Below are positions 5,352 through 42,938 of a stretch of DNA of 64,000 nt, piece after piece. Positions within the stretch are counted from its first letter, which is position 1. Every line of letters begins with the position of its first letter. The notes beneath the pieces are model-generated. The model searched no databases. It saw only the letters and a program-made list of their open reading frames with translations, and had not been told where the DNA came from. A program made the translations under genes and the position numbers. Where the stretch lies: IMG/VR virus record IMGVR_UViG_3300029258_003221, positions 170,632-234,631 of that record; one strand, given 5' to 3'.

Positions 5352-6119
5352 TTAGATATTCAGATCGAAGCCTGAAAACTCCTCAGAGTAAACTTCGTTT
5401 CCGTCCTTTCCTTCTTTTTCCTGTTCGGCGAGATACTGATCTCGTGCCCAGATGACGAACCAACTCTGAGCAATATCGGTCAGTCTCATCTCAAAGTAGT
5501 TCTCACCGTCGATGACAAAACTCACCAGTCGCTTTTTGACCTTAGCAATTCGTTCATCATCAACGAACTCATTACCTTTCATCTGGGTGTCAACAACTTG
5601 TTCCAAGGTGTTCTTGACGGCTTCTCGGAACTCTTCGTTATCGCCGTAATCACGGTCGTGACAAGCATTGTGAACAACCTGACCTGCCAATGGCAAAGAA
5701 TCCAACAGGTCACCATAACCATCGTCACCTTTGTCCTCGACCACATTAAACAGAGGCTTGTACAAAGCTCGTTTGTAATGCTCCCATGTCTTAGCGAAGC
5801 GAAGTGCTTCATCAAAGGTGTAGGGGCATTCTTCGTAGCGATAGCCGCCTCTGGAATCCCAGACCTGAACCTTGCCAGCAGCACTCTGCACTCGGAAAAA
5901 CTCTGAGATAGCATCCTTTGCTGCATCCTGTCGGGTGATTCGTTCGACAACGAGCGGTCGGAAATACTTCTCAAGGATTTCCCAAAACCGATCACCATCC
6001 AACACAGGCAGTTCTTCCATGTAGTGGCGAAAGGCTTTACCAAACTTGGCACCGACACGGTTGTATTCCAGTGCCAGTTCCTGTGCATCGATTGTTTCCA
6101 TATCAAACAGTTTGGTCAT
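5352..6119 (-). CDS. hypothetical protein
   Basis: 255-aa ORF. Confidence 0.8.
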   Translation of the reverse strand: MTKLFDMETIDAQELALEYNRVGAKFGKAFRHYMEELPVLDGDRFWEILEKYFRPLVVERITRQDAAKDAISEFFRVQSAAGKVQVWDSRGGYRYEECPYTFDEALRFAKTWEHYKRALYKPLFNVVEDKGDDGYGDLLDSLPLAGQVVHNACHDRDYGDNEEFREAVKNTLEQVVDTQMKGNEFVDDERIAKVKKRLVSFVIDGENYFEMRLTDIAQSWFVIWARDQYLAEQEKEGKDGNEVYSEEFSGFDLNI

Positions 6120-9750: not shown

Positions 9751-10301
9751 TTCCTCAGTGGAAAAAGTGAATAATCAACATCAACCCAAGTGATTTCGAT
9801 ATGAGGCACAAAGAACTCAGTTTCATGAGGGAAGATTTTGATCAATTTTCTCCACAGTGCTTGTGCTTCTGTTGTGGCACTGTGATATGATGTTTTCAGT
9901 TTGCCGTACTTTTTCAGTATGGTGCTGTAAGCCTTTGTTCCAATCCCACGACCAATTAGTCGGGTGTCATAAATGTCTGAGTGAATAAATCCACCACACA
10001 CTTCAAACAGACCAACCACGGATCGAAATCCTTTCGGGCATTTACCATCCTGAAACTGAAGCTGGAAAGACTCTTCATCTTCATGGTCAAGTTGAACCAA
10101 CTCTAACCGTTCCATGAAATCGTCCACCAAAGGCTTATACCTCACCTTTGGTGGACGCAATGAAGTGAAGCGGATTTTTTGACTCTTCAACCATTGACGG
10201 CACTCTGCTTTTGTGAAGAAGTACCTTGGTTGATCTTCAGTGACAAACCAGTCTTTGCCTGATTTGTATGACCAAAGATGTGATTCTCGAAAAGCCTTCA
10301 T
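9744..10301 (-). CDS. GNAT-family acetyltransferase-like protein
   Basis: motif A-like RLIGRGIGTKAY; TTEAQALWRKL. Confidence 0.6.
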   Translation of the reverse strand: MKAFRESHLWSYKSGKDWFVTEDQPRYFFTKAECRQWLKSQKIRFTSLRPPKVRYKPLVDDFMERLELVQLDHEDEESFQLQFQDGKCPKGFRSVVGLFEVCGGFIHSDIYDTRLIGRGIGTKAYSTILKKYGKLKTSYHSATTEAQALWRKLIKIFPHETEFFVPHIEITWVDVDYSLFPLRKC

Positions 10302-36654: not shown

Positions 36655-37410
36655 GTGAGTATGTATGTTAAAACAATGGAGAATACAGTGAAAAACAAGC
36701 CCCTTGTGAGATTTACGATAGGATCAGTCACTAAATTTGGTTTTGACTGCTTAAAAAGAGCAATAAAACAAATACAAAAGTTGTATCCATGCGATATCAC
36801 TGTTTGTTTCAACTGTGATAAAAAACACGTTAAATATTTAAAAAAAGAATTAAACGTCTTTCTTTTTGATCAATCCGTACACCTAAACGATGACCTCACC
36901 CCAATGGGGGTAGCTTGGAAACTTTATCCTCCAAGGCTTGATATCAACCGTCATGAGATCATTATTGATAACGATATCATTTTGGAGTCAACAATCGATG
37001 AAATCGATGATTTTCTCTCTTGTGACGATCATTGTCTCATGCTTCAGGGAATCTCACGTACCTACGGGAGATTTGAAAAACACGTACCTGCCAATCTGAT
37101 GATCAACAGTGGTTTATTTGGTTTGCCGCCCGGATTCGATTTTGCGACTTATGTAAAAAATCACGCAGGAAATAATTGGGAAGAGAATGCTACGGGAATT
37201 CACTCTGAAAGTGTGACTTTTGACGAACAGGGACTTGTTGCTCTGATTTTATCAAACCAGAAACATTTTCTGATTCCCAACACAACAATTACAAATTGCG
37301 AAAGAAAACTTATGAGAGGAAAGGGAATGCACTTTATCGGTCTCAATAGATGGAAACGACATGAGCCATATTCAGAATGGCTCATGTCGCAACAAAAATT
37401 TCACCTTTAG
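36655..37410 (+). CDS. GT-A fold glycosyltransferase-like protein
   Basis: HEIIIDNDIIL DxD motif; INSGLFGLP, DEQG; the only non-IS plus-strand gene. Confidence 0.7.
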   Translation: MSMYVKTMENTVKNKPLVRFTIGSVTKFGFDCLKRAIKQIQKLYPCDITVCFNCDKKHVKYLKKELNVFLFDQSVHLNDDLTPMGVAWKLYPPRLDINRHEIIIDNDIILESTIDEIDDFLSCDDHCLMLQGISRTYGRFEKHVPANLMINSGLFGLPPGFDFATYVKNHAGNNWEENATGIHSESVTFDEQGLVALILSNQKHFLIPNTTITNCERKLMRGKGMHFIGLNRWKRHEPYSEWLMSQQKFHL

Positions 37411-37988
37411 GGCTTCTTGACAAATTCGTGGATGCGATCCAAATCTTTCTGTGAAAATCGAATGTTGTCCGGTCTTTTATCAAGTTTCCAAGGACTGCCT
37501 TCAACATACACATAACGATTTACTCGCTGACCTTTATGGAACTGACGATCTGCCTCTTTGTTAATAGAAGTATTTTGATTTGCCTGAAGGCCCAAGACAT
37601 GAGTTCGATGCATCAATTCTTTGTACCCATCTTCAAGGGCACCAATTCTTTTCTCGGTTTGAGCATCAATACTTGGTCTCAAATCATAACTTTCAGGTTC
37701 TGAATATGGCTGTGTGTATGATTGAGGTGGTTGTTGTGCATACAATTCATTTGAATTGTCTTTGTTCATGAGTGACCAAATTCCAAAAATGGTCGCCAAA
37801 GACAACATGGTTGCAAATGCTCCCAAAAACACTGTTGCACTATTGGACCCACTAGACCCACTAGACCCACTCTGTTCTGGCTGTGATTGTGCATAAACAG
37901 GTGCCGTAAACCTACGTGGCTGACTTGGCCTCGTTCCTGCTCTCACACCATTTTTGATCGTTTCTAAATCTTGTTGACTAAGTTTCAC
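37407..37988 (-). CDS. single-pass membrane protein
   Basis: TM VFLGAFATMLSLATIFGIWSL; GTG start with GGAGG SD. Confidence 0.75.
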   Translation of the reverse strand: MKLSQQDLETIKNGVRAGTRPSQPRRFTAPVYAQSQPEQSGSSGSSGSNSATVFLGAFATMLSLATIFGIWSLMNKDNSNELYAQQPPQSYTQPYSEPESYDLRPSIDAQTEKRIGALEDGYKELMHRTHVLGLQANQNTSINKEADRQFHKGQRVNRYVYVEGSPWKLDKRPDNIRFSQKDLDRIHEFVKKP

Positions 37989-38654
37989 CTATCCTCCTTT
38001 GGTCATTTCTTCTCGCCTAGTATTTATGAGATCTCGAAGCTCTTTTCTTGGCAACTTATCGTGATTGTTATGAAGACGCCTCAATTCCCTGCAATTTTCT
38101 AAACTTATGTCGTAAGCTCCCTTGAGGTTATTACAAACACTACACATTGTTTGGTAATTTCGTAATTCATCTTTGCCACCACGACTTTTTGCAAGAATAT
38201 GATCTTTTGTCATCAGGACCAATCGACTATTCTCTTCAGCATACAAATTAAAATGTGGAGATTGGTCACCGGGATTAATATCCAAGATCATTTTTGTGCC
38301 TTCCAAACCACATGAAACACATGAAGTATTGTCTCTAAACACAAAATAACGATCTGAATTCATTCGCACTTGGTAGATTTGTCCATCTACTTCGTACTCT
38401 TTTTTTACATCTTCTTCGGTAATGTAGGGAAAGACTTCATCGACACTGTAAGTCGCCAGATGTTCCAGCTTCTTACGTTCCTTCATCTTTGCTATGTCGA
38501 GTTGAACACCAAAACCTTCAAAATCATCCCCGTGTGGTTCACATTCGAGTATGCTTTCAAGTAATTTTTTGGCGTGCTTGAGACATTCAGCACGAGGTTT
38601 GTCTGAGTCGAATCTCCACGTTATCGTAGCTATAGCCTTGTAACTGGTCATCAC
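37989..38654 (-). CDS. HNH endonuclease-domain protein
   Basis: CVSCG...TKDHILAKSRGGKDELRNYQTMCSVCNNLKG. Confidence 0.85.
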   Translation of the reverse strand: MMTSYKAIATITWRFDSDKPRAECLKHAKKLLESILECEPHGDDFEGFGVQLDIAKMKERKKLEHLATYSVDEVFPYITEEDVKKEYEVDGQIYQVRMNSDRYFVFRDNTSCVSCGLEGTKMILDINPGDQSPHFNLYAEENSRLVLMTKDHILAKSRGGKDELRNYQTMCSVCNNLKGAYDISLENCRELRRLHNNHDKLPRKELRDLINTRREEMTKGG

Positions 38655-38696
38655 TACTATCTATTCCATTAGAAAAATATTTGCATCCTTGCGAAC

Positions 38697-38725
38697 AGTA
38701 TATACAAAAACTTAGTTTTGAGCAA
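38697..38725 (-). promoter_or_regulatory. sigma70-like promoter
   Basis: TTGCTC-17-TATACT upstream of the HNH gene. Confidence 0.6.
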
Positions 38726-38726
38726 A

Positions 38727-38760
38727 TAAAAAGCACCGGATGACTTGCACCCGGTGCTTT
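38727..38760 (-). terminator. intrinsic terminator
   Basis: AAAGCACCGG/CCGGTGCTTT + T-run. Confidence 0.85.
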
Positions 38761-38885
38761 CAACTTCTTTTGTGTTTGACACACATTCCGGGTCAAGCCC
38801 GTCCCGAGTGAAGTGGCCTCGGGGGAAGCGTGGTCCGAAGACCATCACCGCACCGCCACTCTGTGAGAAGGCACAGAGAACCTAA
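38727..38885 (-). ncRNA. candidate stand-alone small RNA with possible pseudoknot
   Basis: hairpins CTCTGTG/CACAGAG, TGGTC-UUCG-GACCA, CCCGAG/CTCGGG, GGG/CCC, TGTGT/ACACA; GTGGC can pair with loop GCCAC; upstream promoter and own terminator. Confidence 0.6.
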
Positions 38886-38890
38886 TTACA

Positions 38891-38919
38891 ATAGTAATCA
38901 CCAAGCATAATCTTGATAA
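38891..38919 (-). promoter_or_regulatory. possible sigma70-like promoter for the sRNA
   Basis: TTATCA-17-TACTAT. Confidence 0.45.
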
Positions 38920-39129
38920 TTAAGTCATTGCAAGAGCGTTAGAAGGAATTATAGCTGGAGTTTTGGGCCTTACGAAAAGACCAAAAGCTGCATGTGCAAC
39001 CACGCCACTTAAACAAGGTGTGGGCTCCCAATTTCGACTTACAGACGAGTAATAAACATCGCCCATTTGAATCATTTCGCCAACATTCAGAACTCTGAAT
39101 CCTTCCGGGCATTCTGGCACTTGGCTCAT
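38920..39129 (-). CDS. hypothetical protein
   Basis: 69-aa ORF. Confidence 0.7.
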   Translation of the reverse strand: MSQVPECPEGFRVLNVGEMIQMGDVYYSSVSRNWEPTPCLSGVVAHAAFGLFVRPKTPAIIPSNALAMT

Positions 39130-39138
39130 TTTGTTCCT

Positions 39139-39624
39139 TTACGTGTCAATGATTTTTACTCCGGGGAAAATTCCACCCAGAGAAATGTTGGAGATACATC
39201 TTGGAAATTCACCATGCATAACGCCCTCATAAAGAACTTTATGCATTTGACTTGCCGCAACTATGGCAGGAAGATTTTTACTTCGAGCCGATATCTGAAA
39301 TCCACCCCAAAAGCTGAATTTCCCCACAGAAACTTTATCTTCTACAACATCCATGTTCTCTTGGTTGGCATTGATGGACCAATTAAGAGAATTTTTATCT
39401 TCACTGTTCGTTGGAAAGAACACATGAAGATTGTCTTTGGGACTGTAAACACACGTCATGCCACTCTCTTCAATAGTGGCAATCATTCCATGTGTCAAAA
39501 TCTGGTGTCTTCGCAATGGCCATCCGCAACCGGGAATGAAAGACAGAAGCTTATAGAATCTGCCAATCAAATACCAAGTTGCAAAGATGGCATATGCAGC
39601 GGAATACTGTAGAAGTTTCTTCAT
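39139..39624 (-). CDS. hypothetical protein
   Basis: 161-aa ORF. Confidence 0.75.
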   Translation of the reverse strand: MKKLLQYSAAYAIFATWYLIGRFYKLLSFIPGCGWPLRRHQILTHGMIATIEESGMTCVYSPKDNLHVFFPTNSEDKNSLNWSINANQENMDVVEDKVSVGKFSFWGGFQISARSKNLPAIVAASQMHKVLYEGVMHGEFPRCISNISLGGIFPGVKIIDT

Positions 39625-39627
39625 GAT

Positions 39628-40188
39628 TTACTTCTTGTTGTAAATTCTTGAAGCACGATCCATCATCTCATGAATTGCTGGAACCATCGTGTGAGGAATG
39701 GATTTGTTGTTCATCAAATTCTTCTGAACTACCCTTACGGACTCAGCATGATCAATTGCCTTCCTGATGCCAACATGTCGGCTGAACTTGTCGTTCGGAT
39801 GGCACATGCTCCATCCAATAACAGCATCTATTTCAGACGGACCTGTATTGATGGAAATGACCACGCCAACAATTGGGGATCGACGTGAACGCCAATTTCG
39901 CCTGACAGAAGTGAAAGCCTTATTGAAGGCTGCTTCGTCTTTGAAGCTATCTTCACCAGACAGAATGGGTTCGAGAAGACGTTGAGCCACAGCGACACTC
40001 AAAGTGTCACCAAAAGAATTCAAAATCCCCCTGATGGCTTGTGTTTGTGCTGCATTGCAACCTTCAATTGGCCTTGATCGTTTTGCACGAACATAATTCA
40101 CGAGCATTCGTTTGCTCTGTGAATCAAAATGTTCACGAACAATGCGGCGACAATCTTCGATGTACTCTGAACGTGTATTTTGCGTCAT
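39628..40188 (-). CDS. hypothetical protein
   Basis: 186-aa ORF; IGWSMCHPNDKFSRHVG motif common in phage proteins. Confidence 0.8.
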   Translation of the reverse strand: MTQNTRSEYIEDCRRIVREHFDSQSKRMLVNYVRAKRSRPIEGCNAAQTQAIRGILNSFGDTLSVAVAQRLLEPILSGEDSFKDEAAFNKAFTSVRRNWRSRRSPIVGVVISINTGPSEIDAVIGWSMCHPNDKFSRHVGIRKAIDHAESVRVVQKNLMNNKSIPHTMVPAIHEMMDRASRIYNKK

Positions 40189-40227
40189 TAGGATACCCTT
40201 CCTCGAAAAAAGAAAAACACGCAGAGC

Positions 40228-40500
40228 TTAACCGGCCTTGCGTTTAAATTCTGCTGGCGAGATCAACTGATAGTTGAGGCCAACAGCTTTAGCCATTTTC
40301 CAGATAGTCATGTGTCTCGGATAACGAGTCTCACGTTTACCCAGTTTGGCCACAGTTGAATATGAGAGACCTGCTGCTTTTGCAAGTTCGCCCCATGTCC
40401 AATCTTTTACATCACAAGCTGCGATGAAGATTTCATCTGTCTTTTTGTGCAGGTCACGAAACTTTTTGTCCTGAACACTTCCAACAACTCGAAGAGTCAT
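40228..40500 (-). CDS. XRE/Cro-type HTH transcription regulator
   Basis: TWGELAKAAGLSYSTVAKL...P...TIWKMAKAVG. Confidence 0.85.
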   Translation of the reverse strand: MTLRVVGSVQDKKFRDLHKKTDEIFIAACDVKDWTWGELAKAAGLSYSTVAKLGKRETRYPRHMTIWKMAKAVGLNYQLISPAEFKRKAG

Positions 40501-40541
40501 GTCGTCTCCTTGGTAATCAAACGGACTTCACACCATCACAA

Positions 40542-40570
40542 ATAGTAACGATGCTTTTTTGATTGTGCAA
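40542..40570 (-). promoter_or_regulatory. sigma70-like promoter
   Basis: TTGCAC-17-TACTAT. Confidence 0.7.
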
Positions 40571-40585
40571 CCGAGTTTTGATAAA

Positions 40586-40653
40586 TGCTCGTGAGGGGAA
40601 TCGAACCCCTTGACTACACGAATTTAGAATTCGCTGTCTATCCATCCACGAGC
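40586..40653 (-). tRNA. atypical 68-nt tRNA-like element, anticodon CUA, no D-stem
   Basis: acceptor GCTCGTG/CACGAGC + A73; anticodon arm GCGAA-TTCTAAA-TTCGT; T-arm AGGGG-TTCGATT-CCCCT; only 12 nt in the D region; no encoded CCA. Confidence 0.7.
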
Positions 40654-40658
40654 TAAAA

Positions 40659-40698
40659 CTCCCTGCCATCTCATCGTCCGTATAGAAATGGCAGGGAG
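40659..40698 (-). terminator. 11-bp hairpin + T-run directly upstream of the tRNA-like element
   Basis: CTCCCTGCCAT/ATGGCAGGGAG. Confidence 0.65.
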
Positions 40699-40712
40699 CG
40701 GGCCGAATGCCA

Positions 40713-41021
40713 TTAGTTTTCCAATACTTCGATCACCTCAGATCGAGAAAATTCGACAATGTCACAACAAGTAATATCCATTTCAAATCGAGGGATATTG
40801 TCCAAAATTCCACGCAGTTCTTCGTCGTTGTTTTCAGCTATGCTAGTGACAAGCACCCACATGTATTCACACTTACCACATTTCGTCGGAAACGAAAGTT
40901 TAACATGCTTACCGGCAAAGAAATCCAAAGATTGTTCAACAAAGCGAGGATCAGGTGGCCTTGTGCCTTCAGAGACAATTCCAATATTGAATGCTGGTTC
41001 AATCAAGGGAACCTCCTTCAA
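40713..41021 (-). CDS. DUF2314-like protein
   Basis: EYMWVLV...GILDNIP...IVEF. Confidence 0.6.
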   Translation of the reverse strand: MKEVPLIEPAFNIGIVSEGTRPPDPRFVEQSLDFFAGKHVKLSFPTKCGKCEYMWVLVTSIAENNDEELRGILDNIPRFEMDITCCDIVEFSRSEVIEVLEN

Positions 41022-41779
41022 TCAATCAGGTGAGAACTGGCAATGCGACGACCACGAAGAAGAATGTCCACAAGGCGATCATCTCCCATTGCCCTAACAC
41101 GACTGATGATTTCTTCCAGATCACGTTCGATAGCAAGGTAGCCATCTGTATCTGATTCGTTGTGAATCAGTGATCGACCAGAAATTCGTTTGCTTTTACC
41201 AGCACCGGCTCTTGGCCCTGTATGCTGATTGGGATCAGGAGAATCCTTCATCTTTGAACGAACGCCCCTGACCAACTCAGGCTTCACCTCAAGACCATCC
41301 AATGCACAATATTCAATGATCTTTTTGGTTGAAAGATTCGGCTTTATTCGCATAGCACGCTCAACCATCGCTGACAGATTCAGCTTGCCGTTGTGTTCAG
41401 GAATTGGATCGTTTCCGTATCGCTTCCTGATTTGATTCTTGGCAAGATAGATCTCCTGCTTCTTCAACGGATTATTTGCATTCAGTTCACTCCAAATGCT
41501 GATCAATGTGTCATTGTCAGCATGAAGATTGTGAAGAACAAGATATCGAACCAACTTCGATTTGCTGTCTTTTCCTTTAGTCTTTCTCCCTGACTTGTTC
41601 AAAGAAGCTGCCGCACGATGCACGGTAGAAATATGAACTTTGTAAAACATAGCCAATTTTTGGCGACTGACTTCGGGAGTTTTCTTTAGGACATCCCGAA
41701 TCAACTGGGTTTTATTAGCACCCGGCTTTGCCTCTGGAAAGAAAAACCCAGTTTCATTGTCGTCTTTTGGGAAATGCAT
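41018..41779 (-). CDS. putative DNA-binding protein with repeated helical modules
   Basis: ANKTQLIRDVL...LAMFYKVHISTVHRAA (HTH-like); second module NLSAMVERAM. Confidence 0.6.
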   Translation of the reverse strand: MHFPKDDNETGFFFPEAKPGANKTQLIRDVLKKTPEVSRQKLAMFYKVHISTVHRAAASLNKSGRKTKGKDSKSKLVRYLVLHNLHADNDTLISIWSELNANNPLKKQEIYLAKNQIRKRYGNDPIPEHNGKLNLSAMVERAMRIKPNLSTKKIIEYCALDGLEVKPELVRGVRSKMKDSPDPNQHTGPRAGAGKSKRISGRSLIHNESDTDGYLAIERDLEEIISRVRAMGDDRLVDILLRGRRIASSHLID

Positions 41780-41793
41780 TTAAACACCTTTCG

Positions 41794-41970
41794 TTACATG
41801 CACCATTGACTATTGGCGTAAAATGTAGGCGATTCAATCCAACAACAAGCTTCCTCTCCAAGAATCTTGCGTTGTTGATCAGTCAGGTTTATTTGGTCAT
41901 ATAAACCCTGTTTCCGAAGCTGCCTCTGTTCCTCTGTCAACAAAGACAGTGCCTGTTGCTTGTCGAACAA
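41794..41970 (-). CDS. hypothetical protein (below ORF-track cutoff)
   Basis: AGGAG SD + TTG; LFDKQQALSLLTEEQRQ..., 58 aa. Confidence 0.6.
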   Translation of the reverse strand: MFDKQQALSLLTEEQRQLRKQGLYDQINLTDQQRKILGEEACCWIESPTFYANSQWCM

Positions 41971-41981
41971 TCGACCAACTC

Positions 41982-42857
41982 CTAAGCAGCGACAGTCAGG
42001 AATTTCTTGACTGACTCTTCCATACGTGCAGCACGCTTTTCTGGCTCTTCGCCAATAGCGAACTCAAAGTTCTGACACACGATGGTGATTTTGACAAATC
42101 GCAGCAGGTTTCGCAACTGTTCGACATTCTCACAGTAGCTGCAAGCTCGCTCCATGAAACCGTCCTTGATTTTCAGGACTTTATCCATAACGAGCAACCC
42201 ACGCTCTTCATCTGTGATAGGAGGCAGACTGACATTCTTTCTGCCTTTAGCGGGACTGGCATTAAAGTAACCAAGCAGTTTTTTTGCAAGGCCCTTCTCT
42301 GTCTCATCTTTGCTGTAGTAAAGCTTGTCGAAGCTTTTGATGAGATTAAGCTGACTTTCAATGATGAACTCAGCATCGCTTTCATCACCAGATTCAGCAA
42401 CGATCTTTTCAGCAGTCTTCTGAGAAAGACCCACAAGATCACTGGTGAGAGCAGCAATCACCACACTTTCAGGTGTTTCATCTTCCTGAAGTTCATCAGG
42501 TTTAGGGATGAAAGACGCAAGAGCGTTAGTTCGAAATTTCACCATGAAGAGAAACGACATGTCTCTCACCACGGCAGAATCTTTTTGAACGACAATTCGA
42601 GGATTTGGTGGAAGCTGTTTGTCATTCCACATAGCCTGCGTCCATCTTTCAAAAAGCTTGTTGCCAACAACAGCTTTCTTTTGCTTGACCACAGGATCAA
42701 TGACTTCTGCCACTGCTGCCGAACTGATCAGATCCCTGACATCATCAATCAATTCTGTGTCTGGGTTCCAAACAGTCTCGTTCTTCTTTTTAACGTCTGA
42801 AGACTTCTTCTTTGTTGCTTTGGAAGCAACCTGTTGCAGCAAATCCGGCTTTGCCAT
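41982..42857 (-). CDS. hypothetical protein
   Basis: 291-aa ORF downstream of a promoter. Confidence 0.85.
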   Translation of the reverse strand: MAKPDLLQQVASKATKKKSSDVKKKNETVWNPDTELIDDVRDLISSAAVAEVIDPVVKQKKAVVGNKLFERWTQAMWNDKQLPPNPRIVVQKDSAVVRDMSFLFMVKFRTNALASFIPKPDELQEDETPESVVIAALTSDLVGLSQKTAEKIVAESGDESDAEFIIESQLNLIKSFDKLYYSKDETEKGLAKKLLGYFNASPAKGRKNVSLPPITDEERGLLVMDKVLKIKDGFMERACSYCENVEQLRNLLRFVKITIVCQNFEFAIGEEPEKRAARMEESVKKFLTVAA

Positions 42858-42902
42858 TTTTCAACCCTCTTTCGTGAATGTTTGAAACTTGTTTACCCCA
42901 AC

Positions 42903-42933
42903 ATTCTACGGAAGATTTTTTGGGTTGTAAAGC
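42903..42933 (-). promoter_or_regulatory. sigma70-like promoter GCTTTACA-N15-CGTAGAAT
   Basis: TTTACA-17-TAGAAT. Confidence 0.8.
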
Positions 42934-42938
42934 AAATG

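Follow-up and report, generated by a model that had tools for sequence, protein, structure and literature searches.

In a huge phage that reads the standard genetic code, we identified a 68-nt tRNA-like gene with an amber (CUA) anticodon and no D-stem, which is conserved in related phages with compensatory base changes and therefore looks like a working tRNA of a shape so far described only in animal mitochondria. The window analysed here is a 64,000-nt stretch (positions 170,632 to 234,631) at the end of the 234,631-bp IMG/VR virus record IMGVR_UViG_3300029258_003221, which has 42% G+C and was rated about 44% complete by CheckV, and is thus a fragment of a huge phage. The element is located on the minus strand at window positions 40586-40653 (RNA position i corresponds to window position 40653-(i-1)), and the genes around it all run on the same strand. 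A preliminary description made from the sequence alone had reported a D-armless tRNA-like RNA with canonical acceptor, anticodon and T arms, the loop UUCUAAA, a D region cut to 12 nt, no CCA and an 11-bp hairpin right upstream in a standard-code phage, and direct reading of the sequence confirmed this observation apart from the length of the hairpin.

The RNA reads GCUCGUG / GAUGGAUAGACA / GCGAA-UUCUAAA-UUCGU / GUAGUCA / AGGGG-UUCGAUU-CCCCU / CACGAGC / A, followed by UUUAUC without CCA, and all 17 stem pairs are standard. The 7-bp acceptor stem (5′ strand at 40647-40653, 3′ strand at 40587-40593) is Watson-Crick at 7 of 7 pairs and is followed by the discriminator A73 at 40586. The anticodon arm (40618-40634) has a 5-bp stem and a 7-nt loop with U33, the anticodon CUA at 40625-40627, A37 and A38, and the T arm (40594-40610) carries a canonical T loop of the UUCRANY type. 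In contrast, only the 12 nt GAUGGAUAGACA (40635-40646) link the acceptor stem to the anticodon stem, where they form no stem and carry G8 instead of the near-universal U8, so that the D-arm and U8 expected of a tRNA are absent. The 7-nt variable region GUAGUCA lies at 40611-40617.

Detection of the element with standard tools was marginal. The Rfam tRNA model (RF00005) aligned to it end to end but skipped the 15 D-arm positions, giving 29.9 bits against a gathering score of 29 (E 2.7e-4 in the local search and 3e-5 genome-wide) only with permissive filters, whereas the scan in gathering mode reported nothing. Default ARAGORN found nothing, while its mitochondrial mode (-mt) called a 'D-loop' tRNA(cta) of 68 nt. 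The 126-nt stretch containing the element folds with z = -5.07, and 0 of 200 shuffles folded as well. Moreover, the same 115 nt, comprising the hairpin and the tRNA, occur 100% identical in three other independent assemblies (L027, L028 and L210), so this is not an assembly artefact. The assemblies holding this phage came from runs DRR337537 and DRR337538 and from JGI Ga0180432.

Immediately upstream of the element, the segment 40654-40698 contains a GC-rich hairpin (40659-40698) of 14-15 bp with a 12-nt loop, rather than the 11 bp stated previously, followed by UUUU (40655-40658), A and then G1 of the tRNA. The hairpin begins 15 nt after the stop of a 102-aa gene (40713-41021, minus strand) with a weak, sub-threshold DUF2314 match. 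The genome has about 25 such hairpin+T-tract sites, most of them 4-60 nt after same-strand gene ends, and this one therefore looks like an ordinary intrinsic terminator, although with only four U. A homologous hairpin of different sequence occurs at the same position in the related contig L029, and a similar one lies 4 nt upstream of the canonical orthologue in another relative, L249, so that the idea of a coupling between the hairpin and D-arm loss was dropped. Strains 96-98% identical to the window carry an extra 114-aa gene (L027:9107-9444 and L028:457-794, versus window 40711-40718) inserted exactly between the 102-aa gene and the hairpin, indicating that this junction is a hotspot for gene gain and loss. 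On the other side, a 90-aa Cro/CI-type HTH gene (40228-40500, minus strand) lies downstream of the element, and a promoter-like TTGCAC-17 nt-TACTAT (40542-40570, minus strand) precedes it. Equivalent motifs (TTTACA-17 nt-TAGAAT or similar) sit upstream of the HTH gene in L029, L211, L212 and L219, but the site did not pass the consensus scan and is inferred by reading alone. No promoter belonging to the tRNA itself was found. The whole element resides in a variable island of about 4.3 kb (38655-42938, minus strand; genes of 291, 253, 102, 90, 186 and 161 aa), flanked by genes conserved in two IMG/VR phages with 50% AAA+ identity (L006 and L007). These two phages lack the island and carry only sense tRNAs. 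Just upstream of their AAA+ gene (about 9900-9995 in both), a long hairpin (GGCCCG...CGGGC followed by a T run) encloses a T-arm-like CUGG-UUCRACU-CCAG.

To trace orthologous loci, the downstream HTH gene was followed through protein collections and the contigs carrying it were retrieved. A covariance model built from the window copy alone recovered a tRNA upstream of the HTH gene in L029 (45.8 bits), L220, L225, L223, L245, L212 and, weakly, L248. Since MAFFT alignments of the family mis-registered the 5′ half, the covariance model and a motif-anchored parse were used instead. The results revealed orthologues at the same place in eight lineages of related huge phages. Canonical 4-bp D-stems within an 18-nt D region are present in L245, L220 and L223 (CUUC/GAAG) and in L248 (GGCC/GGUC), a weakened 3-bp stem within 20 nt is present in L212, and no D-stem is present in L225, L029 and the window, whose D regions measure 15, 13 and 12 nt, respectively. 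ARAGORN's drawing suggested degenerate D-arms in L220 and L223, but re-parsing showed a perfect CUUC/GAAG stem. The three D-armless copies share the acceptor feature G5-U6-G7, which suggests that the loss probably happened once. Yet their phages are far apart, with 64% AAA+ identity between window and L225, and 70% identity for the HTH protein and 58% for the 186-aa neighbour between window and L029. These three lineages are all from metagenomes, and L029 and L225 are each known from a single contig.

Comparison of the eight orthologues showed that 14 of 17 stem pairs have double (compensatory) changes, that the acceptor stem and all 5 pairs of the anticodon stem covary, and that each sequence keeps 15-17 of 17 pairs (16-17 in the D-armless lineages). 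On the covariance-model alignment, which is fitted to the model and includes the canonical paralogue described below and so leans towards the structure, 96.6% of cells are paired, and the covariation score is 0.90 against 0.27 in shuffles (0 of 500 reach it) and 0.13-0.24 with slid partners. Window and L029 differ at seven pairs, six of which are compensated on both sides. The anticodon is CUA in seven lineages, with the loop YUCUAAA in all of these except L248 (CUCUAAU). In L245 (4011-4082), which has a canonical D-arm, the loop is CUUUAAA and the anticodon is UUA, an ochre reader. Both anticodons read stop codons, which argues that the anticodon itself is used and under selection. A73, G1-C72, the T loop (UUCGAUU or UUCAACU) and a U-rich 3′ trailer (UUUAU) also recur.

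In the D-armless clade only, the surviving 3′ part of the D region is complementary to the variable loop, namely GAC (40636-40638) with GUC (40612-40614) in the window, GAC/GUC in L225 and GGCU/AGCC in L029. This pairing, stacked under the anticodon stem, is predicted in each of the three independent minimum-free-energy folds, and two of its pairs differ by double changes, while the orthologues that keep a D-arm have no such complementarity. The prediction rests on three sequences, and the L225 fold is not better than shuffles (z = -0.16). In addition, the GG of the D region may be consumed by the helices in L029 and L225, so the tRNA elbow may not form.

To determine how widespread the D-armless form is, several further searches were carried out. 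A blastn search against INPHARED phages gave no match, and an exact-pattern scan of IMG/VR for the window's own anticodon and T arm gave nothing. Two broader pattern scans of IMG/VR yielded only canonical CUA tRNAs, and none of the about 170 phage tRNA(CUA) genes thus fetched has a short D region of this kind, implying that the state is clade-specific and not generic noise. A scan of one JGI metagenome with a different and less specific pattern returned only the L029 contig, the near-identical copy L210 and canonical tRNAs. A pattern specific to the D-armless form found one chance match in IMG/VR, a canonical tRNA (L251), and nothing in GTDB species genomes. In an unrelated phage contig (L113, IMGVR_UViG_3300005563_000475), a 71-nt tRNA-like element on the minus strand around the CATGGTTGGGCCGC motif, with an encoded CCA, a good acceptor and T arm, a poor anticodon stem and a stemless D region, starts right at the TAG stop of a gene and is followed by a ribosome-binding site and ATG.

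The preliminary description had also stated that the code appears standard because long genes are not broken by TAG, and this holds for the whole 234-kb record, although about 56% of the genome is unseen. Stop-to-stop ORFs of at least 100 aa cover 0.90 of the record under table 11, and reading TAG as sense adds little. Rough codon-usage-based gene calls (342 genes) end in TAA 149, TGA 148 and TAG 45 times, so that TAG ends about 13% of genes. An 840-aa portal gene is intact, and tblastn of relatives' ORFs showed no TAG-specific interruptions inside conserved alignments of real genes. Every place where coding sequence continues in frame past a TAG is an ordinary gene junction of the form TAG-GAG-N6-ATG. 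The longest such continuation in the record is at window 37986-37994, where an HNH endonuclease gene (37989-38654) ends GGAGGA-TAG and is followed directly, in frame, by GTG and a 193-codon ORF (37407-37988, minus strand), an arrangement that is not conserved in relatives. No TAG stop or extension is conserved among the island orthologues either. The in-frame TAG codons expected of a code-15 phage were thus not found in the record, and neither was a release factor or GlnRS gene.

Outside the window, the record holds other tRNA-related features that the preliminary description could not have seen. A canonical 75-nt tRNA(CUA), scoring 52 bits and detected by default ARAGORN, lies at genome positions 5677-5751, about 205 kb from the element. 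Its anticodon arm (GCGAG-UUCUAGC-CUCGU) resembles that of the element and its T arm equals that of the L245 orthologue, suggesting that it is probably a paralogue. It sits in a small cluster (5522-5914) between two tRNA genes with roughly 80-90-nt insertions (150 nt at 29.4 bits and 158 nt at 33.4 bits), which are too short for group I introns. A 488-aa PolyA_pol/CCA-adding-enzyme family protein (66 bits) is encoded at 107671-109137, its own gene ending in TAG, and the tRNA genes of the genome lack CCA. A 115-nt tRNA-like RNA at 146975-147089 (minus strand; Rfam tRNA 20.7 bits) has an acceptor GGUGCAG/CUGCAUC, a T arm, a short stemless D region and a long arm in place of the anticodon arm, and is likewise preceded by a terminator-like hairpin plus U-tract about 15 nt upstream, although its fold z is only -1.77. 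Default ARAGORN also called a 140-nt 'tmRNA' at 134421-134560 (minus strand) with the tag peptide DNEKRPMFRSCLG followed by a stop, but Rfam gave only a 13.7-bit T-arm fragment there, and it may be a false positive or a small tRNA-like RNA.

Taken together, we moderately favor the interpretation that the element is a structurally reduced but functional, probably weak, nonsense-suppressor tRNA, belonging to a family of phage tRNA(CUA/UUA) genes upstream of a Cro/CI-like HTH gene, in one subclade of which the 5′ strand of the D-stem was lost and the remaining 3′ strand is predicted to pair with the variable loop. The anatomy, orthology, covariation, anticodon conservation, standard code of the 234-kb record and presence of a CCA-adding enzyme gene are established by our analysis, which is entirely computational, whereas expression, processing, charging, decoding and what is read through are inferred. 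In this model, the RNA would be made by read-through of the leaky terminator hairpin of the upstream operon, RNase P would cut at G1 and leave the upstream mRNA with a protective hairpin-U4 3′ end as a possible stabilising by-product, an RNase Z-type activity would trim after A73 at the U-rich trailer, and the phage or host nucleotidyltransferase would add CCA. A host synthetase tolerating loss of the D-arm would then charge it, and A73 with G1-C72, U35 and A36 would fit the identity rules for Tyr or Lys best. The tRNA would read UAG with low efficiency, and the read-through might concern TAG-containing genes in the unseen part of the genome, low-level extension of TAG-terminated proteins, or perturbation of host termination. 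Against this interpretation, the gene lies between a terminator-like hairpin and the next gene's promoter-like site, the canonical tRNA(CUA) could do the decoding, and no target was found in the record. Of the three readings offered in the preliminary description, the minimal suppressor is thus the best supported, though from sequence alone, the decoy for anticodon nucleases has no support, and the decaying tRNA is contradicted, so that its interpretation was supported only in part.

An alternative, which we consider unlikely, is that the element is a tRNA-shaped processing signal at which RNase P and RNase Z cut the polycistronic transcript to separate the upstream and downstream mRNAs. Neither enzyme needs the D-arm, so its loss would be neutral. 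In line with this, the tRNA lies within 0-5 nt of the upstream stop, without a hairpin, in L212, L220, L223 and L225, and 2-4 nt before the next ATG in L212 (4753-4831), L220 (841-915) and L223 (4468-4542), which implies that it must be excised from polycistronic RNA, while in window, L029 and L249 transcription must read through the hairpin, whose U4 abuts G1 in window and L029. In L212, L220 and L223, the only Shine-Dalgarno-like sequence (GGAG or GGGGG) for the downstream ORF is the 3′ acceptor strand, and folding or excision of the tRNA could therefore gate its translation. However, both enzymes need only the acceptor/T minihelix, which does not explain why the anticodon stem covaries at all 5 pairs, why the loop YUCUAAA with CUA is kept across lineages sharing only about 47-64% AAA+ identity with the window phage, or why the only anticodon change is to another stop-reader. 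The two roles are compatible, as this alternative denies only the decoding. Somewhat less likely still, the element may be a non-decoding mimic that titrates or distracts a tRNA-targeting defence nuclease, a synthetase, a modification enzyme or RF1, or a suppressor variant reshaped to escape a host nuclease that recognises the D-arm or elbow. Phage tRNAs are reported to counter tRNA-cleaving defences, the element lies in a variable accessory island, and the coexisting canonical paralogue leaves room for specialisation, but no cellular tRNA carries CUA for it to mimic, which makes it a poor decoy for anticodon nucleases, and no defence or anti-defence gene was recognised beside it. Finally, a decaying pseudogene left after a deletion in the D-arm is very unlikely, because, although orthologues with full D-arms exist (the circumstance named beforehand as a possible sign of simple decay), a canonical paralogue could make the element redundant, it has no promoter of its own and default finders miss it, the three diverged D-armless lineages keep compensated stems, an invariant CUA anticodon and T loop, and the new predicted helix.

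A bolder possibility, which we hold only tentatively, is that this is the first natural, translationally active tRNA without a D-stem that works with bacterial-type machinery, a phage amber suppressor that replaced its D-arm with a D/variable-loop helix, converging on the mitochondrial tRNA-Ser(AGY) architecture, and may have been selected either as a deliberately weak suppressor or to evade host factors that recognise the tRNA core. Our literature searches found no report of a natural D-armless tRNA in phages or bacteria. A natural, conserved D-armless tRNA in phages would show that evolution has already explored this fold outside mitochondria, provide a ready-made minimal suppressor scaffold for genetic-code engineering, explain why suppressor tRNAs go undetected in many phages, since default finders miss it, and give a testable case of nonsense suppression in a phage that still uses TAG as a stop.

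Comparison with known systems places the element as follows. The tRNA-like domain of tmRNA and the bacterial Y-RNA-like (YrlA) tRNA mimics are acceptor/T-arm mimics with a reduced D region, but they lack an anticodon arm, which is intact and conserved here, and at this site there is no tag reading frame or Ro-binding stem, ARAGORN found no tmRNA in the window, and no Rfam tmRNA or YrlA match was obtained apart from a 12.7-bit fragment. Like the amber suppressor tRNA(CUA) of TAG-recoded phages such as crAss-like, Lak and other huge phages (Borges et al., 10.1101/2021.08.26.457843), the element is phage-encoded, has a CUA anticodon with A37, lacks an encoded CCA and sits in a huge phage with other tRNA genes, and that preprint also reports suppressor tRNAs in some standard-code relatives and predicts non-canonical phage tRNAs that escape the usual finders. 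It differs in that no TAG recoding is visible in 234 kb, that G1-C72 and A73 are not Gln-like, and that the D-stem is absent, whereas the about 170 phage tRNA(CUA) genes sampled here all have one. The engineered D-armless 'mini HisT' (Edelmann et al., 2024; PMC11551756) is a suppressor without a D-arm that E. coli HisRS, EF-Tu and the ribosome accept without adaptation, which supports the feasibility of our model. However, mini HisT is synthetic and His-specific and needed a pnp mutation for stability in vivo, with PNPase-dependent instability as the limit, whereas the phage RNA is natural and conserved, and the same paper states that all known bacterial tRNAs are canonical cloverleaves. In the cryo-EM structure of human mitochondrial tRNA-Ser(GCU), which represents the metazoan D-armless tRNA-Ser(AGY/GCU), a short D replacement loop pairs with the vestigial variable loop and extends the anticodon stack (PMC9427863), and the same kind of pairing is predicted in the folds of the phage RNAs. 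The phage RNA nevertheless keeps a canonical 7-nt T loop, a 7-bp acceptor stem and a longer 12-15-nt linker that contains GG, would work with bacterial rather than mitochondrial machinery and would read a stop codon, and it has an independent origin from a canonical phage tRNA.
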